A stretch of DNA of 63,374 nucleotides, filler included, from Reticulomyxa filosa (taxonomy: Eukaryota > Protista > Foraminifera), in assembly GCA_000512085.1 (NCBI GenBank). It is 16 parts of 16 records of this genome, joined end to end, with 100 filler letters (N's around TTAATTAATTAA, not from the genome) between each part and the next. Parts side by side here need not be neighbours in the genome. Positions count along the whole stretch, not along the records: positions 8,144 to 30,736 come from ASPP01026239.1; 15 more parts are not named here. One strand, 5' to 3'. Below are positions 8,044-26,526 of the stretch, one piece after another. Within the stretch, counting starts at the first letter, position 1; every line of letters begins with the position of its first letter. The notes beneath the pieces are model-generated. The model saw only the letters and a program-made list of their open reading frames with translations, did no database searches and was not told the DNA's origin. Both the position numbers and the translations under genes were made by a program.

Positions 8044-9168
8044 NNNNNNNNNNNNNNNNNNNNNNNNNNNNNNNNNNNNNNNNNNNNTTAATTAATTAAN
8101 NNNNNNNNNNNNNNNNNNNNNNNNNNNNNNNNNNNNNNNNNNNTTATTTCTTTAGAATGATTAAATTTTTTTTTTAAAAGTATGTATCTTTTTTTTTTAG
8201 AAGTAAAAACGTTACAACTTAAAAGTTGCTATTTTTTATTGAGTTAAAGGTTAATTCTATGTGGCATTTTGTTATTACGTTTCACAAGCAACAAGGATTT
8301 GGTAAGATAAGCGTTTTTGAAAGATATTGCTGAAACCTTAAAATTATTTGTTGTGTGTATGACTTGTATTTGAAATAGTCGGAAGAAAAGAAATTAAGGT
8401 AATTATTAAATATTGGGTTCGAATATTAAACATTAAATTAGGTTGAACTTTGATTTTAACAACTTGCTGCCAAATTTGTTATGTTTTTTACTTTTTGTTT
8501 TTATCATTTAATTGTACTATCTTTATACAATGAAATGCAAAAGAAAGTTGACATAAAACGGCACCTTATAGAGATGATGATTTTCTTCATGAAAAAACAA
8601 CATCCAGACATAATTTTTAAAAAATTCTCCAAATGTTTTGCACCAATTTTTCAAAAAAAATTTTCATAAAGAAAATCTATCATCTCTATAAGGTGCTGTT
8701 TTTGTATCAACTTTTTTTTGCATTCTACTGTAAAATAAAAATCTAAACTTTCTAAAAACTTTAATGTTGTTTTGCAATAATTAAAAACGCAAGATAAGTA
8801 ATTGATTTATTAACAAATTACATATAATAAAAACTAAAGACAATCAGTATTCTGAAAGATAGAAAGATTTTTATTATGCTTGTTGAACTGAAGTTGTTTT
8901 TTTCATTATTAAAGCTAGTAGTCATTCTTTGAAATTGATGATAAATATCTCACTCAATATGTGAATGTAATAAAGAATCCCTTCAAACAACAATGATTTT
9001 TGTTGATGAACAAGAAATTTCTTATTTCAATTATTACAAAAATTATGAATTTTTTTTAACAGATTTAAGAGCTGAAAAAAACTTACAAACAAGAGAAAAA
9101 GGGGTTTAAAAAAAAATGGGTTAGAAGAAAAACTTTTAAAAAATTTTTCAAATAACTGAACGTTAAGT

Positions 9169-12134
9169 ATGTCTTACAAAGCTTTTCTTTGCTTTGAAGA
9201 AGAGACGCATGAAGTAACACTTTCATCTTTGAGCTTAAAAAGTTTGGAAGCTGAAGTAATAGAACTACTCAACGCAACAACTATTAATGATAATGATTTT
9301 AAAATTGTTGATAACAATGGTGAAGACGTTACCAATGATGAAGAATTAAGAGCTGCATTTAAAGTGGAACCTGTTTTCTTTTTTATTTACAGTTTTGTTG
9401 TTAGTAATTTATTTATTTTTAAAAAAATTGGAAAAAAAATAGGCAGTGGCAATGATACAAAGAAATATCCAGAAGAAAAAAAAAGAGAAGAAGATAGTGT
9501 TAGCAGTGATGACAGTAATGACAATGACGACAAGTATGATGACGATGATGATTATGATAATAATAATCATGATAATGATGAATGTTATAAAATTGTAAAT
9601 CCATTGGTATTATTGACAGGAGCTGCAAGATATGACACTTTAAATTATTTACCCAAAGTAAACAAAGATTTGATGATGATTAAAGACTTATTTGAAGAAA
9701 TATATGAATACAATGTATGCTGTACTTATAATCCAAATCATCCTGAAAGTGACACATTAACATTGAATGAATTAGATATTTTTTTGAAGAACCATCATTA
9801 TTATGATAACAATTGGGATTCATTAATATTTGTATGGTATGGCTATGGTAATACAATATCAAATGAAGGAGATGTGTTAATAACATCAGATGATCATAAA
9901 CATAAATCATTTAAAAAGATACAAGAATTCTTTGCAAATATGTTTTTACATAAGCCAAAGATATTTATTAAAAATATATATAAAGAAAATAAAGAAAAAC
10001 AACAACAACAGCAATTGTATAATAGCGAATCAGATACTTTTATAATATCGTCAATAACTCCTATGAAATTGGCATCTAATCATAATAATATAAGTCATTT
10101 TACCGAGTGTTTTTATAACATTATGTCACAAAGCAGTATATCATTGGAATCATTAAAATCACTAAATGATAATTTGATATCAATTAATAAATTAATTAAA
10201 CAAAAGCTATTAAAAGGACAAACTAATGAAACTGTAATAAATTGTGATAAAAATATATTTCTTTATAATAATTATTTATTAAATATAGGCATTGAGATGA
10301 ATAAAAATCATCCATGGAATGAAGCAAATAAAATAGCACATGAAATGATGAATGAAATGATAGATGAAAAACAACAAGGAATAATAGTTGTTTCAACAAA
10401 TATTGATAAATTAGCAAAATCAAATAATAAATGGTTTTGGCAAGATATGCCATTTACAATGATGATAAATTCAATAGAATATATGAAAAAAAAAATATAA
10501 TTGGGCCATATTCAATTTGTGTATTTCATTCAAGAAAAATAATATTTGATAACATTGTAATTGATGGATGCGTTTATGTTATTGATTGTATTATTGATGG
10601 TTATGGAAAAAATTATATTACTAAACAACTTATCCACACTGATAATTCTATTATTCAATGTTTTTTTTATTCTTATGTTTTTATTTATTCTTGGCCTATT
10701 GATATAGTAAAATCAATAAATTTAGGAATAGATGAATTAGATAAATTAGATGAATTAAAGTTTAATAAAGCAATACAATATTTTCATTTTATACTTTGTT
10801 TTAAATTACAAACATTATGTAATGACGATTACGATGATGATATTATAATGGCTTATGCGTGGTTAGGTAGAGCATATGATGATAAAAAAGAATATGACAA
10901 AGCAATTAAATATTATAAAAAAACACTAAAAATATATTTAAATAAAGATAAATATAATAATGTTGATGTTGGAACTTTATATAATAATTTAGGGAGTATT
11001 TGTTATTATAAAAAAGAATATAATAAAGCAATAAAATATTTCAAAAAAGATTTAAGAATTAATAGTAATAATAATAATGATCTTAATATTGCAACATCTT
11101 GTGGTTGGTTAGGTTTAGCATATAGAGGAATAGGAAAATATAATAAATCATTAAAATATTTTGAAAAAGCATTACATATTGAATTAAAAACATTTGGTAT
11201 TTGTCATACAGATGTTGCTACTTCCTATAGTAATTTAGGAATGACTTATAATAAAAAAGGCGAGCATAATAAAGCAATTGAATATTATAACATGTCATTG
11301 AATATTAGATTAGATAAAACAGGATATTGGCATATTGATATTGGTGCTTTATATAATAATTTAGGAAGTGCATATAATAGTAAAGGTGAGTATGGTAAAT
11401 CTATTGAATATTATAAAAAGGCATTACCTATTTTTTTATATAGATCTAAATTTGAATATAATCATTATATTCTTATTGGATTATATAGTGGTTTAGGACT
11501 TGCATATAAAGATAAAGGAGAATATAATAATGCAATTCAATATCTTAAAAAATCTTTAGATATTAACTTAAAAACATTAGCACATGATAATCCTTCAATT
11601 TCTGTTGCATATAATAATTTAGCATGTCTTTATAAAGATAAAAAAAAATTTAATAAAGCAATTGAATATTATAAAAAAGCATTAAAAATTGTTTTAAAAA
11701 GTGATGGTCATCATCGTGATATTTCTATTTATTATAATAATTTAGGACAATGTTATTATATTAAAAAAGAAAATGTAAAAGCAAAAAAATATTTTGAAAA
11801 ATCATTAAAAATTAAATTAGATACAGTAGGATCTGATCATATTAGTATCGCTAATTCATATATTAATTTATCATATATTTATTGTTATGAAGGACAATAT
11901 AATAAAGCATTAGAAATTGCCAAAAAAGCGTTAGATTTAAGATTAAAAAAATTAGATCGTAATCATCCAGATGTTGGTGCAGCATATCTTGCTTTAGGAG
12001 ATATCTATCATGAAAAATTTGATATAATAAATGCAAGAAAATATTACGAAAATTCATTGTCTATTTATACTCAAAAATTAGGTACTAATCATCCTAAAAC
12101 AAAAAATGTAACAGCTACATTACAAAAATTGTAA
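9169..12134 (+). CDS. PB1-like + inactive caspase-like (C14 fold) + ~10 TPR protein; one -1 frameshift in the A10 run at 10486-10495
   Basis: N-terminus YKAF...FKIVDNNGEDVTNDEEL is PB1/OPCA-like. NPLVLLTGA..Y...LP.V.KDL...DLFE, DSLIFVWYGYG...GDVLITSD and KPKIFIKNIYK align with the active caspase-like gene at 42478 but lack His and Cys. These are followed by ~42-aa kinesin-light-chain-type TPRs (YNNLG..Y..KGEY.KAIEYY.KAL). A small in-frame intron probably ends at 9442. Confidence 0.8.
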
Positions 12135-12584
12135 TTGTATCATTTATTCATGTGTTTGTGTTGATTTGATCAATTAAAATTTGATCCAAATATATTGTAG
12201 TAAATTACTGCTTAGAGAAAGCCTTTGTTAAGTGTAATAATAGATTGCTAACATTTGAGCAAACTTTAGAACTTAATTCAATAATACTGTATTTTTGTTT
12301 TATTACATTGATTCAATAGGTATGGCATTGACTTTAAAAAACATCGGTGCCATACTCTCCTCAGCAAATAAATGACAAAAAAAAGATCTTGTACTAATTT
12401 TTTGGACTCTTTAAATTTTCAAAAGAAAATACTTTTATTTCTCACTTAAGTGTTAAGATTATCCCCGAACATGAGCAGTATTTGAAGTACGCGTGAAAAT
12501 GCGATAAGAGGTTTTTAAAAAACTGGAGTTGACATCGAACTTTTTTATTTATTTTATAATAACTATAACTCTAAATAAAAAAGA

Positions 12585-14432
12585 ATGCCGTACAAAGCTT
12601 TTGTTTCTCTTGAAAAAGAGGTGCATAAAGTAACACTTGTTTTTCTCAGATTAAAAAGCTTGAAAGAAAAAGTACTAGAGATAATTAACAATGACAAAAC
12701 AAAAAATTATACAAATTATTTTAAAATTGTCGATAATAATGGTGAAGACATTACCAGTAATAGAAAATTAGAAACAGCATTTAAAACGAAACCTGTTTTC
12801 TTTTTTATTCATTTTATTCAAAGTTTTGTTCTCTTTTATTTATTTATTAATTTATTTTAATAACAATTGATTGATCAAATAGATGATGACAATGATGACG
12901 AAAAGAAATATCCAGAAGAAAAAGAAGAAGAAAAAGAAAAATGTCACAAAATTGTAAATCCATTAGTATTATTAACAGGTGCTTCAAAATATAAAAATTT
13001 AGATAATTTACCTATGATGAAAAAAGATTTAATGACGTTTCGAAATTTATTTGAAGAAATATATGGATATGAAGTATATTGTACATATGATCCAAATAAA
13101 CCTGAAACTGAATCATTAACATTAAATCAATTAAATGAATTTTTAATGAAATATCATAAAAACAAAAATAAAAATAATTATGATTCATTAATATTTGTAT
13201 GGTGTGGTTATATTAATACAATATCAGAAAAAGGAGATATATTAATAACATCAGATGATAATAGATATAAACCATTTAATAAAATACAAGAATTATTTTC
13301 ATTTTTAAATAAACCTAAAATATATATTAAAAATGTATATCAAATAAATGGATATAATAATCAACAATATCATAATTGTGAATTAGATACTTTTATAATA
13401 TCTTGATCAATTCAAATGAATATATGAAAAAAAAATTAATAATTGGACCATATTCTGTTTCTTCATTTTATTCAAAAAATATCACATTTGATAATATTAT
13501 AATTGATGGATCTGTTTATGTTGTTGATTGTATTATTGATGGATTTGGAAATTGTCATATTACTCAACAACTTATCACTACTAATCAATCTATTGTTCGT
13601 TATCATTTCTATTCTCATGTTTTTACTTGTTCTTGGCCTATTGATATAGAAAATTTAATGGAATTGGGAGAAAATGCATTAGATATCCCAAAAATCAATG
13701 AGGCAATTCAATTATTTCGTTTTGCACTTTGTGTTAGATTGCAAACATTACATGATTTTCATGTCGATGTTGCGTATTCTTATTTCTGGCTGGGCAAAGC
13801 GTATGGTAACAAAGCAGAATATGACAAAGCAATTGAATATTGTGAAAAATGTTTAAAAATTCTATTGAATAAATTGGGACCTGATCATCCTGATGTTGCT
13901 ACTTTATATAACTATTTTGGATATCTTTATGGTAACAAAGAGGAATATGACAAAGCAATGGAATATTGTGAAAAATCATTAAAAATTAGATTGAATAAAC
14001 TGGAACCTGATCATCCTGATGTTGCTACTACATACAACAATTTGGGATGTGTTTATGAAAGCAAAGGGGAATATGACAAAGCAATTGAATATTATGAAAA
14101 ATCATTAAAAATTAAATTGAATAAATTAGGATCTGATTATCTCAGTATTGCTACTTCATACATTAATTTATCAATTGCTTATTATAATAAAAAAGAATAT
14201 GACGAAGCAATAGAGTTTGGAAAGAGCATTGAATTTGAGATTGAATAAACTGGATTCTAATCATCCAGATGTTGGTAATGCATATGGTATGTTAGGGGAT
14301 ATCAATTATAAAAAAGGTGACAAAATAGAGGCAAAAAAGTGTTATGAAAATGCATTGTCGATTTATACTCAAAAATTGGGTAATAATCATCAAGATACAG
14401 AAAAAGTCATGTCAAGATTGGAAAATTTGTAA
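12585..14432 (+). pseudogene. Tandem paralog of the PB1-pseudocaspase-TPR gene with ~5 TPRs; disrupted
   Basis: Same domain order, with intron 12823-12882. A ~410-nt frameshifting deletion at about 13402 corresponds to ~10051-10462 of paralog 1, and a further frameshift (about 2 nt missing) lies at about 14220. Confidence 0.8.
13802..14300 (+). repeat. 126-nt coding tandem repeat (42-aa TPR units) with high internal identity
   Basis: GAATATGAC[AG]AAGCAA recurs at 13817, 13943, 14069 and 14195, an exact 126-nt period. Confidence 0.9.
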
Positions 14433-15890: not shown

Positions 15891-16558
15891 TTAGAATTTT
15901 CCACCACGTTGTCCCACAAGCAACTTCTGTTGAGGCGTCAAGCCAGTTGCGCTCTTCCAAATACTGTCTTTCATCGATAAACCAAAACGTTGAACACCCA
16001 TTTGCCAAATACACTTCACTAAACTCGAAGCACTGACGTCAATTATTCTACCATCATCACTACCCCATAATCGAATTGTTCTATCTTCTGAACATGAAAC
16101 CATCTTTGAACCGTCCGGTGATAACTGCAGTCCTAAAATAGGCCCAGAATGTCCCTCCAACAATTGAATTTGTCGTCCTGAAGATAGATCCCAGAATCGT
16201 ATAGTCCTATCATCCGAATGTGAAATAAGTTTGGAACTGTCCAGTGAAAAGTAAACTCCAAACATTATATCTGAATGTCCCTCTAAAACTTGAAGTTGTT
16301 TTCCGGACGACATATCCCACAATCGAATTGTATTATCATCTGAAAATGATACAAGTTTTCTACTATCTGGCGAAAATTTCGCTCCCCTTACCAAATGAGA
16401 ATGGCCTTCTAATAATAAAAGTTGTTTCCCAGACAATATATCCCACAGTCTAATGGTTTTATCATCTGAATAACTCACAATTTTAGGCTCATTTGACGAA
16501 AATTGTACGCCTCTAATGGCTTTTGTATGTCCTTGGAAGGTAGAGTAGCATAAGCAGT
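15891..16558 (-). pseudogene. 5'-truncated WD40-repeat gene with a STAND/NACHT-WD40-type C-terminal tail
   Basis: About four 42-aa repeats (LEGHS..V.G..FSPD..KLVS.SDD.TIRLWD) end in GLSMKDSIWKSATGLTPQQKLLVGQRGGKF. The frame is closed upstream by a stop at about 16560 with no in-frame ATG there; an unseen upstream exon is possible. Confidence 0.65.
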
Positions 16559-17043: not shown

Positions 17044-19358
17044 ATGCATTCAAATGACATTACCAAACGGCAAGAAAGTGAAAACGTGGACACCGCACCT
17101 TCCTTTGAAACGTTGACCCCATTGCCTGTTCCATTTCGTCATACGCGATGTGTGACCTACAAAGATGAGATTCTCATATGTGGGGGTTATCAAAACAATC
17201 AATGTTATTCCTATCACACACTCAAAAATGAGTACAAATACATCTGCTCTTACCCGGATGGCTTTCCATTGCGTCGACACTGTGTAGTGAAGATTGTGAG
17301 TGGCACACACAGAAAGGACAGCACCTTGTTGTCGTTTGGTGGATATGAAAATGAAAAAAAGCACGCAGTTGTGCTGAGATATAAGAGCGTTTGGAACAGT
17401 GATGAAAAAAAGGAGATTGGAATTGAAAGGGCAAATGGTTATAACAAATGGCTTCCCTTTACTGACAATGACAACAATCCAATTTGCATTGGAAGAGACG
17501 AAAGTAATTACGAAGGAGTGCGTGCAGTGATTGGTGGAAGCAATAATCATTTGTTGTTTATTGTTTACGAGCCGAGAAATATTGATGTGTTTGATTTGCA
17601 CACATTTCAATTTGTGAAGCAGGACATTTTGCCATGTGTATCCGATGTATATTATCCGTGTTTGATATCAAAGCTAAAAAGCGAAGCCGCAATGATGCAA
17701 ACAAAAAAAAAGAAAACCGAAATGGTGTTACTTTGCAATGAAACAGGATTGGCAATTGACTACAGTGAAGAAAATAATGCATTTCAATTCAACAAATTGC
17801 AGCTTTGTACAACCATTAAAACATTCCATGCGTATGCCTGTGTATGTGTTGATGATATCGTTTTGATTTTTGGTGGATTTGGTGGCTTTTCCATTGGCAT
17901 TTCCAAAGACGTCTACAAGTACTCGATTGCAAAGAACAAATGGATGAAATTTGATTGCACTTTGCCAATTCAACTACACGAATGTGAAGGAGTATTGAGC
18001 GAAGACAATACTTCTGCGTACATACTGGGAGGGTGCAGCATAGACGAAGGCTCGCCGATACATGTGAAGACAAATGTAAAGCAATGGACGAAGGAGCATG
18101 CAACAGAAAAAGAGAAACGATGGATTACCGAGGAAGAAGAAAAAATAGAGGTGGAAAAGATAAAAGCTGAACTGGAAGAAATGGAACAGGAATTGGATAT
18201 TAAAAAACTAAAAGTTAAGAAATGACTGAAAAGATATCATGTTAAAAAAAAAATCAAAAAAAAAATAAAAATAAAACAAAATATAGAGATTCAAAGAAGT
18301 GAAAATAATAGTCGAACATTGGAACAGACTATTGTGCATCAAATTGGGATGGATTGATGAATTCGACATAATCATTTCACGATATATTTTGGTACATTTG
18401 TTTTATCTTTTGCTTCCTTTTTGTTTTGACAGGTTCCTTTGAAAGAAAACAATCACAAAAATAGATGAAATATTTCAAACCTGTAAAAGCAATTTCTGCA
18501 CATCCCAATAGGATAAACAGTGTAAAATTTTCACCCAATGGAACAAAAGTTATTTCAGCTTCCAACGATAAAACAATACAAGTATGGGACATTGAATCAG
18601 GAAATAAAATTCAAACGTTGGAAGGACATTTACATTTTGTGAACGATGCCAAATTTTCACCAGATGGCAATATTGTTGTGTCTGGCTCTGAGGATAAAAC
18701 CATTCGATTATGGGATGTAAAATCAGGAAGAGAGATTCATAAGCTAAAAGGACATTTAGGTGGCGTAACATGTGTCCAATTTTCGCCAGACGGGGGTATG
18801 ATTGTTTCATGTTCAAAAGATAAAACTATTCGATTGTGGGATGCCAAATCAGGTGAAGAAAGAGAAAAATTGGTCATACATTCGAAACGGATAAAGACAG
18901 TACAATTTTCTCCAAATGGTCAATCAATTGTATCTTCATCGCTTGACACGACAATTGTTACACGAAATGTAAAGTCGAGTGAAAGAAAGCACCAATTAAT
19001 TGGGCGTTTATTGTTGGTATTATCAGCACAATTTTCACCCGACAGTCAATTTCTTGTCGGCTATTCCTGGGATCAAATCGTCCGAACTTGGGATTTGAGA
19101 TCAGGCAAGGTAGTACACAAATTGAAAGGTCATTCCGATCGGATAAAGGGGGCCAGATATTCAACTGATGGCCAAACTATTATCTCTTATTCCGTCGACA
19201 AAACAATTCGGCTGTGGGACATAAAATTAGGACTGGAAATACAAAAATTGAAAGTAGCCCCAAAAGACTATGTGACAAAACTTGATGTTTCACCGGATGG
19301 TAATGCAATTGTTTCATCTTCCAAAAATGGAAAAATCCAACTTTGGAGGTCATTGTGA
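17044..19358 (+). CDS. Kelch-repeat + coiled-coil + WD40 fusion protein (~722 aa); exons 17044-18213, 18287-18391, 18465-19358
   Basis: Kelch motifs (ILICGG, LLSFGG, VIGG, LIFGG, YILGG). Two phase-0 GT-AG introns flank the linker exon RFKEVKIIVEHWNRLLCIKLGWIDEFDIIISRYIL. Seven WD40 repeats follow, and the spliced frame is open throughout. Confidence 0.85.
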
Positions 19359-20026
19359 ATGTTATACAAGCTGAGGCCACTCTGAAAAAAAAATTTTTTT
19401 TTTCTTACAAATATGTTTGACAGACAACAATGACCGAACAAAGACATGTCTATTTTTACAATTTTTATACATACAAGTTGTTCCATAGAAAAAAATAATA
19501 TTTTCAAAAGACAAGGTTATTTTTCAAGTCATTTGTTGTCTTTATAAATTCTTTCAAAAAATATAACTAATAATCAGACACAAACCTATTTGAGACCTGG
19601 TAAGTGTCATAATTTTTTTGAACAATTGCGAAAGTATTATAATTTTTGTTTTCTAAACTAAACTAAAAAATGGTGGCTAGTCGTTATTCATCATTTGTTT
19701 AGTAATGATTTTTAAAATTAATTTGTGACTTTGAAATATTCCCTATAATCAGATTGAAAAAGATACAAGAGTATTATTGTTCGTAGTATTTATTTCTGTT
19801 TTTTGTTAAAGATTTTTCTCTTCAGTGTAACTCGTTGAATGGTATAGTTGTACAGCCCGATGTAAGACTGAGCAGTCAATTTTCGCAAAAACAACTCTAC
19901 AGTGAAAAAAACTTCTTTTGTTATCAAAAAAATAGAAGTAGTGTAACGAATTTTTAAAACAAGAAATGAAAGCCTTTGGCGAAAGGGGGCAAGGGGAAAA
20001 AAAAAGAAATATAATATTCGAGAAAA

Positions 20027-23000
20027 ATGGAAAGACGCCTCTTTGGCTCATTACTTTGTTCAATAATAACGCTCTTGAGTTTGTTTCGTGTGATCCAAAG
20101 TTACGAAATAAGCTGTGAGACAAATACAGTATGGACCTGTCGGTCAAACTCAAGTAACCCGAAGTGTGTAATAACCGTTTCACCAAGCAAGTGTGAAAAT
20201 GAAGCAATAATGCCAACCTCAATATTGATTGAGATGAGTGTGGACAACAGCGATACGAAAGTGAGTTTTTACAATGAGATTGTGTGTGACGTGGATCAAT
20301 GTCAGCAAACGAAGATAAGCATTGAGTTGGTAGGAGCAACGCCAACGACGAGTCGAATGGTGCACGTGGAGAATAAAATCGAATGCCAAGGCAGCGAGAA
20401 TAGAAACGACAAAACATGCCAACACATGAACATCAGTATCGAAACTGCTCCTTTGGCCAACACGTCTGTGGGCAGTAGCAACTCGACTTTGGCATGCATA
20501 CAAAGTCAATGCTATGACTTGACGATGACTGGCGTTGGGACTGATCTAATCATTCAAGACGATAGATCTCACAACATTAATATCTTTGGAGCATTGGCTA
20601 ATTCATTGCTAATAGTTGATAATAATATATACATACAAATATATATATATATATATATATTTTATATTTATGTACAAATGTATACTCTTAAAAAAAATAA
20701 AATAATAATAATGGAATAGGTGAGTAACAGCTCAATGTTCAATACATTGATGAATAGTAAAGTGTATTGTTCGACATCGACGTGTAACATCAAATGTGTG
20801 TCGGTGGAGAACGAGAACAACCGAAGCTGTGGGAAAGGCTTGTGGATCGAGACGAAGAACGGAGTTGCGTCAACAAGCAGTGTGTCAGGATACCAAATTG
20901 TAAGCAGCGAGTTGTCAATGGTTTGTCCGTGGACGTCGAAGAACAGATGCTTTGCGGGTGCAAACTTGTATATGCAAAGCCCTTTGAAAGAGTGTGCGAT
21001 CGGCCCACTGTTCGAAGAGAACCATCCAAATGTGGTGACGAACCTCTGGGGATGTGAGGCCAGTACGTATCTGTCTACATGCAGTGCACGCATTAGCAGT
21101 GCTATTTGGTCATTGGTGCCATCTCCGCCTTCGCATTCACCTTCGCATTCACCTTCGCGAGCGCCTACAGCCGCACCGTTACTGTCGTCGACACTATCGT
21201 CAGAGTCGACTACATCCACATCCACATCCACATCCACATCCACATCCACGCCACCTACGAAAGCACCCGCACTCTTTCCGTCCTCGTCGCCGTGGGTCGT
21301 GAACAATGCGACCACGCCGTGCCATTCCTTACAATGTCCGTTTAACAACTCGGTGGTGTGTCAGACCTTCCCCGTTGTCTACGTACTCAATATCTCCGTG
21401 GACGTCGCCGACATCCTCAGTTTCATTCGCTATAACCTGTCCGACGCCCCCGTCGTCCAGTTGCCAATGCTCTTGTATAACCAACTGCTTTGCACAGATG
21501 AGCTCCCTTGTTATGGACAGTGGACCATCCAGTTGTCTATGGATCACGTCAACGCGAGCGACACTCAAAGTTTTTTTTTTTTTTTTTTAAAAAAAAAAAC
21601 TAAATCTTTTTTTAACGAGTGACAAATAATAAACATATATAAAAACAAAATATAATAACAATGTTCAAAAAAGCGTGGGAGGAAACCACGAATGCAATGT
21701 TCCCACTGTTTGCATTGCAGACGGAACTGCGATGTGCTACCAACGTGGCGTGCGGGGATCTAAGTGACATCACAATGCGAGGTCTAGTGAATGGGAAAAA
21801 CGAATCGACCGACTGGACTCGTCTGCATCAAAAAGACGGCGCATGGCCTGATGGACTACCACTTGGACGTGCGTCTAATGAGTGCAGGGCCTTTTGTTAT
21901 CGACTTGTCGCACGCGATCAAGTCCATTCGCCACTTTGTTGCCAACTCAAAGTTGGCGCTAACCGTGAATAATGACCGCTGGCAGTCAAACACAAGTAGC
22001 AACAACGCCGACAGCACGTCGACGGCAGTTCAAATATCGTCCTGGGATTATGTAGTTGTCCAACAGTCGGGACTGACAGCCAATGTCTTGGATATCTATC
22101 AGTGTGATAGTGTTAATATTAGCACTGAAAACTGGGCCAATTCCATAGTGAATCTGTATCGAGTTAATATTAGCAATAGCAATAACAATAACAGTGGTGA
22201 TAATGTAATTGTGGCTAGTTGTCGTGGCGAGTGCACGGACAACAAGTGGATGATAGAACAGGATACAACGACGTCGAGTCAGATAACGTGTGCCGACAAT
22301 TGCGCGCGGAACAATGTGTCAGTGAGCACAGCTGTGAACACTGACGTGGGTACCAGCGTGGTGACGTGCGACGGATGTGTATGGGACGACAGCAGCGTCG
22401 TTGTGACGGACACGTCGTTACAAGTGAATTGTTTGGAAGAGAACAGTTGCAGTGGAGAGGCACATGTGGACCACCGCGACGCTCATGGACATGTTCGACT
22501 GTACTTGCAGGGCAAGCGAACCGGGCGTGATGCACACTTATTTTGTCCGGCGTCGTTGCAGCAGTCTTGTGTCGTCGAATGCATTAAAGATTATGGCGGC
22601 AGAGATATGGTCATTTATGTCAATACCACCACTACATCATCATCATCATCATCATCTTCTTCTTCTTCTTCTTTAGATGGAAGTAATAAGATAATACATT
22701 GGAGAGATCAATTGCAATTGATCGGACATCAACCCACGTGCTTTTATCACGCGCAGGTGCGGGATTTGAACGACCACTCGCGGGTCTGTTGGCTGTCATT
22801 TCGCGAAAAAAAGCACATTGGCACGTCGGCGTTGGACAAATATTCGTGGGAGTGCGCCCGTCCGTCGTTTGACTCGCTGTTGCTGGTGGCGGCCGTTGGA
22901 ACAAGTGTCTTGCTCGTGTTGCTCTTGCCGCTGCTGCTGCGACAGCAATGGTGGTGTTGTCGTTGCTGCAATTGCAATGCATCATCATCTTTGATTATCC

Positions 23001-25192
23001 ATCCCATGTTCCATTTCTTTGATGTCAGTCATCAAGTATATACCACTTTGTGGACAATGCTGTTCCTGTATGATGTGGGCATCTTTGTCATTCTGCTATA
23101 CAACGATAGTCCCTCCACGCAAAATCGCCTCTTCCGCATCGCTATCAAATACACACTCATCTTCCACTGGGTGCTGTGCGCGCTACTGTTCATCATTGCG
23201 TTCCGAGAGTTCCGCTTCTTTTACTGCTGTCGTCGATCGCCACAGTTAGCCGATGCCATTGATACGTACAATGACAGCTATGACAAGAACAACAACAAGA
23301 ATAATAACAATCGCCAACCTCACTATAAAAGAAATGAACCAAATAACGCTAACGATAATGATGGCAATGATGATGGTAATGACGGTGATGATGATGATGA
23401 TGATGATGATAAGAATGATGGCAATGGTAGTGAGGACAAGAAGGAAATGAGCAATGGAATTTGGTTGGATGTGACATCGAAAGGAAAGACAAAAAAGAAA
23501 AAGCAGCAAAATGAACAGAACTCGAGATCGATGGAGATGGCTATACCAACTTCTAGTCAAGTATTTGAGCAAGAAGGGTTCTTCGACAATGATAGTCTAA
23601 TCGATTTTTACAGCGATAACTACTCGAAGGTGCTATTGCTAATAATCGCGTGTCAACTGCTCGACATTCCGTATCTCACCAAAGGTCTCAAGGATCCAAA
23701 CACCGGACTCGTGCCGCTCATCGTCGTGACTGCCCTCATGTGCATAGGCACGTCGCTGGGACCCATCATCCTTTGCTGTCTCGGACTCTCGTACGGCCTC
23801 GTTACCATTGAAATCTGGGCGCAGCCTGGGCGCTACGGCGACAACGACGACTTGGTCGGCGATTTGGACATTGTCGTCAAGCAGGTACACTACGCTTGGA
23901 TCGCTCTGATTGCTGCCATGTTCGTATGCAATGGCTTTCGAAATCCGTATGTGTCCAATCTCGGATGGAGATGGCTCGGAATGATCGTAAGCATCATGGA
24001 CTTGGTCACCAACATTGGAGTGGTCGTTACCATGTTTCGATATCAACACTATGTCTTATTCGCTCTTCAATTGGCTATCCTTCTCTTTGCTCTGTTCTTC
24101 AATGCCTTTCTGCTGCCCTGGATACACGCACACATCTTTGTGCTTCAACCACAACTCAAGCCTTTTCGGCCGCCTCGTCAATACACGCCCTTCTCCACGC
24201 TCTGCTTTGCTTTGGGACTGGGCGATCTCTATTCCACCTTCTCCATGCTCGCTTTGGCCAATACCACAACCGCTACCAACAGCGACAGTGATAGTGGCAC
24301 TATAACCACGGCGACAATAGACGAACTGTTTGCTACGTATGACCAATATCGCTTTTGGACAATGTGCTGGAGCTCTTTTCCTAGCATTGCCTTGCAAATC
24401 TTTATCATATCCATGCACACCAATGTGTCCTATGTGTACAGCATCGGCTGGTCTTTGACCTGGGGAGTCTTCTCCATTGTCGCCACGCTGCTGCTCTATT
24501 GGTCCAGACATCCACTGCAATCGCAACTCGACGATGCAGACGAACAACACGAGCACAAAGACGACAACTTAGTTGTTCCTTCCAATGATCATATTAATAA
24601 TAATAATGCCAGTCAATCACCTGCAAATGTTGAAAACCAACTGCAAGGGTCGTTACAACATTGGAACTGGGTATCCCATCCCTCATTCATCAATTATTGC
24701 TTGTATACGTTTGTGTATCCTGTACTCTTTATCATCAGCGACTTCATGTGCCGCTGCTTGCCCTTCATCGCCCTTGCACTGGTTGCGCCGCCTTATGTGT
24801 ACGCCTGTGTCTTGGTCGCCTTGGCCCTCTATTGCGCCATGTACTCGTACCACATGCTGCAAGTACACTTTGTCTTGCGCGGAGACATTCGATCTGGAAT
24901 TCAATTCACGTGGTTCTTTTTTTGGATTAGTTTGTGGTCCAGTGCAGTTTACTTTTTACCTTGCTCCGATCCCAACTTCCCCTTTTTACCTAATGTCTTC
25001 AAACGAGATAAATATGCCAATGAACAAGTGAAACGCTTGGCCATTGGCCTCTTTATCTCACTCGTTGCCCTCGTCTTTGACTATCATCAAGACCACAAAT
25101 GGCGCTATATTGCTATTACTATCATTTTTTGGATTTTCATACTCATCAACTGGTTCACCTTTGCCAAACTGTCCAGATTTCTTAATTTCTGA
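20027..25192 (+). CDS. Large membrane protein: signal peptide, Cys-rich and Ser/Thr/Pro mucin-like ectodomain, many TM helices, C-terminal XK-related (Xkr)-like domain
   Basis: Exon 1 is 20027-20614, with phase-0 intron 20615-20719 and exon 2 running to about 21569. The junction into the 1133-aa ORF (21570-21790) is unresolved. XK-like motifs: MDLVTNIGVV..MFRYQHY.LFALQL, YRFWTMCWSSFPSIALQIFII and ISDFMCRCLPFIALA. Confidence 0.65.
21212..21250 (+). repeat. (ACATCC)n coding microsatellite encoding a Thr-Ser run
   Basis: Hexamer repeat inside the mucin-like stalk of the 20027 gene. Confidence 0.85.
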
Positions 25193-26526
25193 GACTACTT
25201 TCAAACTATTCACTCCGAGTTTTTTTTTCCATTCATTCTTCTTCTTTCGTTTTTGTGTGTATGCTAGTCATCGTCGTCCGTTGGTTTGTTCTTTTTTTTT
25301 TTCTCCAACAAGGAGAAAAAACAAAAATAAATTGACAAAAATCTAACAGTGTTTTTTTTGTAAATATAAAAAATTGGGGATAAAAAAAGAAAACAGCTTT
25401 TTTGGCACTGTCTTGACTTTCAAAATTTAGGTTTGTTGGGTTTTTCTGATTATCCCCGAATTCGATTAAAAGGCTCTTGTTTGCTGACAAGCTTTTCTGA
25501 ATCGTAACAACTTACAAAAACAATTTTCTTTTTAAGATACTTATCACTAGCACGTAGCTCTTTACTTGAATTTTGATAGTGAGATATTTTTTTTTTAAAA
25601 GAGTGGACATGATATGCTCAAGATACCTCTCTTTAAAAATTACAAAGCCAATCAATGAAGACCACAAAACGTATTTTAAACAAAGAAAACAAGAAAAACA
25701 CACAAGTGTCTCCATCTCACAACCTAGATAAACAAACAACAACGTCCCACTTGTTGTAGAAGCCGCCAGCAAAAACAACAAAGCACACCAAATACATAAA
25801 GCGACATCAAGGAAGTACAACAAAAACTTTTATGCTCTCTTGCAACTTTTTTTCTTGTTATACTTGTCACCAAACAAAGGCACTGTTTCTTTTCATCAAA
25901 TAAACTAAAGAAAAAATTACTTCTTTTGGGGCGTATAAAAATAACAAAAGGAGAGTAAGGCAGCAGGGGAAGGAAACAAATAAATAATAAATAATGGAAA
26001 TATTTTATGCACAACAAAGTTTTTTGGGAAAACACAATGAAATAAATAAAAACAACATTTAAACCACGTACTAAAAAATTGGAATAATTAAATAACATCA
26101 ACATTCTTGTTCACAACACGTTTTAAAAAAACAAAACATTTATTTTTACACAATTAGTGCACACTTTTTTTTTGTGTGTAATTTTTTGTTCGTTTTCCAA
26201 ATAATAAAAAGGATGAAAACAATGAGTAAGATCAACAGTGACAACAAATAAAAATTTACCTCACACTATTTCATACTTGGCAATGTGTATTGTTTCAAAC
26301 ACTCAAATAGTTTTTACACATTAAAAAAAGCAAAGTGCCAATTAAAACTATTACACATAAAAAAATATCTGTTTTTGACACGTGGTATGTGTGGAGAATT
26401 TATTTTTGCTTGTGTTTTTTTGAAGTTTTGGCTCCAAATCGATCTTTACTATTTTTTTCCCCTCCATTGTTTAAGATTACAAAAAAAACGGTGGGAAAAA
26501 AAGAGAAAAAAAAGAAAAGAAAAAGG

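Follow-up and report, generated by a model that had tools for sequence, protein, structure and literature searches.

What keeps a caspase fold in a genome once the residues that make it a protease are gone is the question raised by two neighbouring genes of the freshwater foraminifer Reticulomyxa filosa. It is customary to see animal-type caspases as having been invented by animals and as being recruited via death-fold domains, and the classic pseudo-caspase is cFLIP. The two R. filosa genes (gene 1, positions 9169-12134, and gene 2, positions 12585-14432) lie in tandem, both on the plus strand, on one contig (C26239, window 8144-30736) of an assembly of 101.9 Mb in 50,809 contigs; the window is the whole stretch of DNA that was analysed, 63,374 nucleotides long, and all positions refer to it. 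Read in six frames, both genes have the same domain order (an N-terminal beta-grasp domain, an acidic disordered linker, a caspase fold and a TPR_12 array), and each is split over more than one open frame. The best protein matches of this piece are 'hypothetical protein RFI_...' entries of R. filosa. We think it probable that gene 1 is an intact and gene 2 a decayed member of a large R. filosa family, and that the dead caspase fold of this family is kept by selection and acts without catalysis.

The caspase fold of gene 1 was assessed with an AlphaFold2 model of the open reading frame (ORF) at window 9169-10497, with 50 relatives in the alignment (this ORF includes 17 intron-encoded residues, which fall inside the disordered linker). 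The predicted local distance difference test (pLDDT) score of the model was 79 overall and >90 in two folded parts, with most of the caspase core >90. Searched against the PDB with Foldseek, the central domain matched caspase-6, -11, -4, -3 and -9, Dronc, CED-3 and the protease-like domain of cFLIP (3h13), with E values of 2e-9 to 1e-7 and target template modelling (TM) scores of 0.6-0.77, and a Peptidase C14 (caspase) p20-p10 fold is therefore present in gene 1. At the level of Pfam profiles, PF00656 matched the gene 2 piece (26.9 bits, cut-off 21.4; E 4.8e-6) and the close paralogues P0010 (2.4e-11) and P0007 (2.5e-15), with no match in the gene 1 ORF at E up to 1.

The catalytic columns were set by aligning a dyad-intact paralogue (L004) to caspase-7 and Dronc: from sequence alone, its 'KNACRGN' falls on 'QACRG' and its 'GSYFTECF' on 'GSWFVQAL' of caspase-7, and its 'CGHG' sits on the catalytic His of Dronc. 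At these columns, gene 1 reads VWYGYG at the His site (Tyr226 of the ORF; TAT, 9844-9846) and KNIYKEN at the Cys site (Tyr271 of the ORF; TAT, 9979-9981), and gene 2 reads VWCGYI (Tyr at 13209-13211) and KNVYQ (Tyr at 13338-13340); the fold motifs are GDVLITSD and KPKIF in gene 1, and GDILITSD and KPKIY in gene 2. Because the catalytic His and Cys are both Tyr in both genes, neither product can be a cysteine protease. A previous description of the pair, which we call the sequence-only reading, had listed the tandem genes, their domain order, their motifs and a catalytically dead caspase fold, and all of these were borne out; it had not listed the introns or the frame breaks of the two genes, or the state of gene 2 as a pseudogene. 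As a separate observation on the active members of the family, the Arg of SWR in caspase-7 (S1 pocket) faces Asp and the Gln of QACRG faces Asn in the one pairwise alignment with L004; with these residues at the S1 sites, active members may not be Asp-specific.

How far the dead state extends beyond these two genes was measured in a census of 70 loci taken from the assembly, of which the 60 with >=150 aligned columns were scored by a family hidden Markov model (HMM). Both His and Cys are kept at 11 loci, His only at 15, Cys only at 4 and neither at 30; one or both catalytic residues have thus been lost in 49 of the 60 loci, about four fifths, and a dead caspase domain is the rule in the family and nothing peculiar to this gene pair. 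A special sensor-and-partner role of the pair is not supported by this count, nor by the decayed state of gene 2. When the catalytic columns are left out of the tree, the dyad states are interleaved on it, and the intact state needs at least six changes (many branches are weakly supported). At both sites the replacing residue is nearly always Tyr (CAT 29 versus TAT 31 at the His site; TGT/TGC 19 versus TAT/TAC 35 at the Cys site), each one GC-to-AT transition away from the catalytic codon (CAT to TAT, TGT to TAT). This pattern fits an AT-rich genome, since GC-to-AT mutation bias would give it once catalysis was dispensable; G+C is 21-27% across the region of both caspase-TPR genes.

The family itself is large and narrowly distributed. 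Searches of the R. filosa assembly gave at least 117 matches to the caspase-like part of gene 1 and, for the N-terminal domain, at least 150 scored matches among 304 candidates, and only 97 protein matches were found among 1.84 billion cluster representatives. Of the 20 of these 97 that were looked up, 13 come from R. filosa (including every strong match checked), three from two other foraminifera (Bolivina and Nonionella transcriptomes) and four are metagenome proteins, and on these database matches the family appears so far only in R. filosa. The weaker foraminiferal relatives have other architectures, with Kelch upstream of the caspase domain in P0067 (Bolivina argentea) and RCC1 repeats plus SAM upstream in P0092 (Nonionella stella); in the metagenome protein P0083 the caspase domain is followed by NACHT downstream. 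Caspase-less members with the PB1-like N-terminal domain, the middle domain and TPR were also seen (P0040, P0044 and P0022; contigs C967, C2677, C27477, C20995 and others of G000); these match only the last ~70 residues of the query, and their N-terminal domain lies just upstream.

Selection on the dead domains was estimated as omega (the ratio of nonsynonymous to synonymous substitution rates) by the Nei-Gojobori method on HMM-aligned codons, with bootstrap intervals. Seven independent dead-dead pairs (both members without His and Cys) gave omega of 0.26-0.46, with upper bounds of at most 0.76, and three intact pairs gave 0.25-0.38: purifying selection acts on dead domains as strongly as on intact copies. 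The branch of gene 1 itself, measured against L003, L005 and L009, gave 0.40-0.42 (confidence interval (CI) 0.24-0.70). With omega well below 1 both in the dead pairs and on the gene 1 branch, we conclude that selection maintains the dead fold across the family and in gene 1 alike. Omega lies at ~0.3-0.5 in each of the three parts (caspase, middle and TPR), and the TPR part (0.28-0.48), being like the other domains, shows no domain-wide sign of diversifying selection. Two properties of these estimates weigh against our interpretation: Nei-Gojobori omega is rough in a strongly AT-biased genome, and a pairwise omega averages over the period in which the dyad was still present and the period since its loss. 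Neutral evolution of the dead domains, an outcome that would have gone against the sequence-only reading, is rejected for gene 1 and for the family, and not for gene 2.

Gene 2 is a pseudogene, the decayed product of a tandem duplication. Its reading jumps frame after '...DTFIIS', and, relative to a 97-98% identical copy (L014, on contig C23809), 352 nucleotides are absent in BLASTN alignments, the lost sequence being the C-terminal third of the caspase fold and some of the middle domain. The frame breaks a second time near 14215, outside any homopolymer. The gene 2/L014 lineage has an omega of 1.2-1.9, with intervals that include 1, and looks released from constraint. What remains of its front part is annotated as RFI_30038, a 253-amino-acid protein (P0109, same contig).

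Gene 1 is probably an intact family member. It runs in frame 1 to ~10495 and then in frame 3 to the stop codon at 12134, with the change inside a run of ten A residues (A10, 10486-10495); one extra A in this run gives the reading ...KKK N IIGPYS..., which is continuous in gene 2 and in other paralogues, and the break is possibly an assembly error. Apart from the A10 shift, there is no in-frame stop over ~2.9 kb, or ~960 codons, of sequence that is 75-80% AT, and the constraint on its branch likewise speaks for an intact gene. An intron bridging the frame change near 10490 was considered and ruled out, as gene 2, L004 and others read the homologous codons straight through. Both genes do have an intron elsewhere, in each case GT..AG and at a homologous position straight after the N-terminal domain; that of gene 1 is in frame and stop-free, which is why the ORF list reads through it, and its equivalent is skipped in the annotated paralogues P0001 and P0010. 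The read-through ORF of gene 1 is present in the protein collection as a 443-amino-acid product.

Against the integrity of gene 1 stands the state of its relatives, in that 12 of 35 family loci are interrupted, by a stop or a break in frame, between the caspase domain and the middle domain, and many family copies may for this reason be pseudogenes rather than victims of assembly errors; the break in gene 1 may likewise be real, and gene 1 may be silent. In several loci (L002, L033, L045 and L065) the breaks lie at A/T runs, a position compatible with assembly errors and with real slippage alike; L001 and L003 are among the other interrupted loci.

The N-terminal domain of gene 1, folded alone with 35 relatives in the alignment (pLDDT 91), is a beta-grasp in the AlphaFold2 model, and its nearest structures are PB1 domains. 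Compared by VIA-align with 48,161 PDB representatives, its top seven rows were all PB1 (among them MEKK3/MAP2K5, Par6, NBR1, p62, Bem1 and TFG; Z 9.9-8.8, root-mean-square deviation 1.6-2.2 over 67-71 residues), and the top rows of an ESM Atlas shape search were mostly PB1-bearing proteins (Bem1, Cdc24, NLP7, NBR1 and the plant TPR-PB1 protein PHOX1; TM 0.75-0.84). Foldseek ranked PB1 and CIDE-N highest, with E values no better than 2.5e-3, and the best match of the family N-terminal profile in the PDB was the Bem1 PB1 domain, at a marginal E of 0.004. A PB1-type beta-grasp, as the sequence-only reading had proposed, is thus what the structural comparisons indicate. The model places Lys4 on strand 1 and an acidic patch at D48/E52/D53/D57/E58/E59, and, among 53 copies, D57 (acidic in 91%) and D48 (79%) are the best-kept polar positions and position 12 is basic in 76%. 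The spacing of the acidic segment is shorter than in the canonical OPCA motif.

Several results weigh against the PB1 assignment. Generic ubiquitin-like and CIDE-N folds come next in VIA-align, at Z ~8, only 1-2 Z units lower; Pfam PB1 (PF00564) has no match in gene 1 or gene 2; and among 36 family N-terminal domains PB1 is not one of the 25 most often matched Pfam families, the Pfam matches being scattered and weak (GRHL1_C, CIDE-N, ubiquitin-like). The PB1 assignment accordingly takes its weight from the predicted fold and the marginal profile match. The strand-1 Lys position 4 is basic in only 69% of the 53 copies. Complex prediction for the N-terminal domains of gene 1 and the dyad-intact L002 scored 0.02 against a mark of 0.34, which gives no support for association and is not evidence either way. 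We describe the domain as PB1-like, and it may polymerise as PB1 domains do.

Both genes end in TPR_12 repeats of the kinesin-light-chain/NPHP3 type (Pfam E 3.4e-73 in gene 1 and 3.1e-39 in gene 2), which vary across the family from 4 to >12 stretches. Between them and the caspase fold lies the middle domain (window 10309-10760; L004:2302-2700), composed of a helix, a strand segment and a beta-rich 'I-x-F-D-x-I-x-I-D-G-x-V-Y' part. This domain matched no Pfam family in intact relatives and, in an ESM Atlas feature search, matched only unnamed bacterial or viral clusters with scores of at most 0.90. A nucleoside triphosphatase (NTPase) hidden in it was considered and ruled out, there being no Walker A motif and no Pfam match. 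More widely, Pfam scans of gene 1, gene 2 and R. filosa family proteins found no NACHT or NB-ARC NTPase and no death-fold domain (CARD, DED, PYD or DD).

For gene 1 as an intact, non-enzymatic family member, we infer oligomerisation, ligand binding, an effect on active paralogues and a biological role along the following lines. Its product would act non-catalytically: the TPR array would bind a protein or peptide partner, the PB1-like domain, with its strand-1 Lys and OPCA-like acidic patch, would let family members join head to tail, and the dead caspase fold would offer a surface for binding or scaffolding when such proteins assemble together with the smaller number of paralogues whose dyad is intact. 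The sequence-only reading had gone further, casting dead PB1-caspase-TPR proteins as ligand sensors in which PB1 stands in for a death-fold domain and which recruit or gate separate, TPR-less active PB1-caspases, in an analogue of the inflammasome or the death-inducing signalling complex. Its components are real (the PB1-like fold, the dead caspase fold and the TPR array), its dead domains are constrained, the genome also contains dyad-intact paralogues that share this N-terminal domain, and the structural matches include the protease-like domain of cFLIP. The division into two kinds of protein is not supported. Among the seven dyad-intact copies with enough flank, six (L002, L004, L012, L033, L043 and L062) carry the same middle domain and TPR tail as the dead copies, and the seventh (L020, G000:C4888, which is P0007) has a C-terminal TRAF-type zinc finger and coiled coil replacing them; no TPR-less active class was seen among the seven. 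Of the TPR-bearing members, most do not retain His and Cys and some do. Dead and intact copies are moreover interleaved on the tree and do not form two lineages, both tandem genes are dead and one is a pseudogene, some members (P0040, P0044 and P0022) have no caspase domain at all, and the complex prediction returned no verdict, all of which leaves us regarding a sensor-and-partner arrangement as very improbable.

Decay might instead be the whole story, with both genes non-functional relics, the break in gene 1 real and the family a swarm of fast duplicating and decaying genes. In favour of this are gene 2, clearly broken and with a lineage omega near 1 or above, the frame break of gene 1, and the interruptions between caspase and middle domains in a third of the loci scored (12 of 35), several loci, such as L022, having multiple stops. 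Such decay is hard to square with the omega of 0.40 (CI 0.25-0.66) on the gene 1 branch, with ~960 open codons at an AT content at which random frames close every dozen or so codons, and with the tendency of breaks elsewhere to fall at A/T runs, as homopolymer-length errors would; we consider it unlikely. By analogy with the NLR repertoires of fungi and animals, the family could also be a receptor repertoire of a syncytial amoeba, for innate immunity or for self/non-self recognition (fusion compatibility), NLR-like without the NTPase and with dead copies as decoys or regulators. Indirect indications of this kind are the very large lineage-specific expansion with tandem copies and frequent pseudogenes, TPR arrays of varying length (4 to >12 TPR_12 stretches), the joining of a caspase domain to NACHT in the related metagenomic P0083, and the WD40 and Kelch repeat genes that adjoin the pair; they are set against a TPR part at omega 0.28-0.48 with no sign of diversifying selection, and against Pfam scans in which no NTPase or death-fold domain was found, and this possibility, too, seems to us an unlikely one. 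More speculative, and in our judgement rather improbable, is a form of caspase signalling that does without an NTPase, is nucleated by PB1 and draws on at least 150 genes; in it, TPR arrays would recognise foreign or non-self proteins, PB1-like domains would polymerise mixed filaments and the many constrained dead members would set the threshold for the few active ones. The account in which gene 1 is intact and its dead caspase fold is kept for a non-catalytic function remains the one that we think probable.

Components of this architecture have precedents. Passages on R. filosa in two publications concern the protease domain: R. filosa Peptidase_C14 proteins are placed there with animal caspases, not metacaspases (Klim et al. 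2018, PMC5982838), and an R. filosa caspase-like protein serves as an outgroup in later work (PMC10959488). Our genes come from the same organism and the same Peptidase_C14 family as those of Klim et al. 2018, whose grouping is in line with our alignment of L004 with caspase-7 and Dronc; the Reticulomyxa passages of both papers treat the protease domain only, and in them there is no PB1-like N-terminus, TPR tail, family size or dyad loss in most copies. The cFLIP(L) protein (PMC7586951), whose structure 3h13 is among the gene 1 matches, likewise has a caspase fold without catalytic residues and is selected as a non-enzyme; it has tandem DEDs, a single gene and a known heterodimer with caspase-8, whereas the R. 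filosa proteins have a PB1-like N-terminus, a TPR C-terminus and dozens of dead copies. Caspase expansions in bivalves include unusual prodomains, with PB1 in one Mytilus coruscus caspase, and His/Cys mutated in a subset (PMC10967218). There, however, the genes number in the tens, PB1 is a rare exception, TPR tails are absent and most copies keep the dyad, in contrast to at least 150 genes and a PB1-like domain as the rule in R. filosa.

Fusions of caspase folds to repeats are also known from bacteria, in which caspase homologues are often joined to TPR or WD40 (Asplund-Samuelsson et al. 2012, PMC3501461); these proteins and the TPR-CHAT proteases resemble the R. filosa proteins in combining a caspase fold and TPR or WD40 repeats in one polypeptide. 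The bacterial systems belong to orthocaspase and CHAT lineages, with no evidence that their TPR fusion shares descent with that of R. filosa, and the bacterial survey discarded copies without the dyad and reports no PB1 domain (PMC3501461). PB1 scaffolds (p62/SQSTM1, NBR1, Par6-aPKC and Bem1-Cdc24) have the same beta-grasp topology as the R. filosa N-terminal domain, whose Lys4 and acidic OPCA-like segment may correspond to their strand-1 Lys and OPCA motif, and plant PHOX TPR-PB1 proteins likewise combine PB1 and TPR; unlike these scaffolds, the R. filosa domain has no Pfam PB1 match, and its acidic segment is shorter than the canonical OPCA. A literature search found no paper combining PB1, caspase-like and TPR, and none on the architecture, size or mostly dead state of the family.

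The features of the two genes are listed in Table 1. About 450 nucleotides upstream of gene 1 (window 8523-8735) is a long imperfect inverted repeat with nested arms (8523-8595 and 8661-8735) and a loop of ~65 nucleotides, which could be a hairpin or an element resembling a miniature inverted-repeat transposable element. The next genes also encode repeat proteins: WD40 at 15891-16478 (minus strand; this ORF looks like one exon of a longer gene), Kelch at 17044-18225 (plus) and WD40 at 18465-19358 (plus). Further along, in window 20000-25200, G+C jumps to 41-48% from the 21-27% of the caspase-TPR genes, and a 1133-amino-acid ORF (21791-25192) there has long hydrophobic stretches, poly-Ser/Asp/Asn runs and no Pfam family.

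Table 1. Features of gene 1 and gene 2 in window coordinates.
Feature	Position	Strand	Evidence
Gene 1 exon 1, PB1-like beta-grasp, 74 amino acids	9169..9391	+	AlphaFold2 pLDDT 91; nearest folds PB1; Bem1 PB1 E 0.004
Gene 1 intron, 51 nucleotides, GT..AG, in frame, stop-free	9392..9442	+	Frame-keeping GT..AG pairs; same position in gene 2
Gene 1 linker, acidic, disordered, Asp/Glu/Asn/Ser-rich	9443..9582	+	Translation; model pLDDT <50, residues 78-136
Gene 1 caspase fold, His and Cys both replaced by Tyr	9583..10293	+	Foldseek, paralogue alignment, census, branch omega
Gene 1 middle domain, ~150 amino acids, family-conserved	10309..10760	+	Three-frame translation versus gene 2 and L004; contains the A10 frame break
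Gene 1 TPR_12/TPR_10 array, ~10 repeats, to stop codon	10761..12134	+	Pfam TPR_12 E 3.4e-73; TPR_10 E 2.3e-56, 10 stretches
Gene 2 exon 1, PB1-like domain	12585..12822	+	Aligned with family N-terminal domains; HMM match E 1e-29
Gene 2 intron, 60 nucleotides, GT..AG, two in-frame stops	12823..12882	+	Translation, GT..AG pair enumeration
Gene 2 linker and N-terminal two thirds of dead caspase-like domain	12883..13403	+	Pfam Peptidase_C14 E 4.8e-6; annotated RFI_30038
Gene 2 deletion junction, frame-shifting	13404..13430	+	BLASTN blocks versus L014 overlap by 27 nucleotides here
Gene 2 rest of middle domain and TPR repeats, frame differs from upstream part	13406..14248	+	Translation, Pfam
Gene 2 last TPR units, third frame	14217..14432	+	Three-frame translation; second break near 14215

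Together, these results describe a large and previously undescribed family of PB1-like/caspase-fold/TPR proteins, in a field in which pseudo-caspases and repeat-fused caspase homologues were already known. They also call for caution in the use of R. filosa 'caspases' as outgroups, as non-proteases make up most of the copies and many copies are broken. The caspase-fold genes of this rhizarian protist are closest to animal caspases and differ from them in their wiring, with a PB1-like domain at the head and a TPR array at the tail, and they lend themselves to testing whether PB1 can take the place of CARD or DED in proximity-driven assembly. If PB1-nucleated signalling by mixed filaments were true, a giant syncytial protist would have arrived independently at protease activation by induced proximity, possibly in the service of immunity or fusion compatibility. 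In any case, the family offers a large natural set of pseudo-caspases with which to ask why a dead caspase fold is kept.

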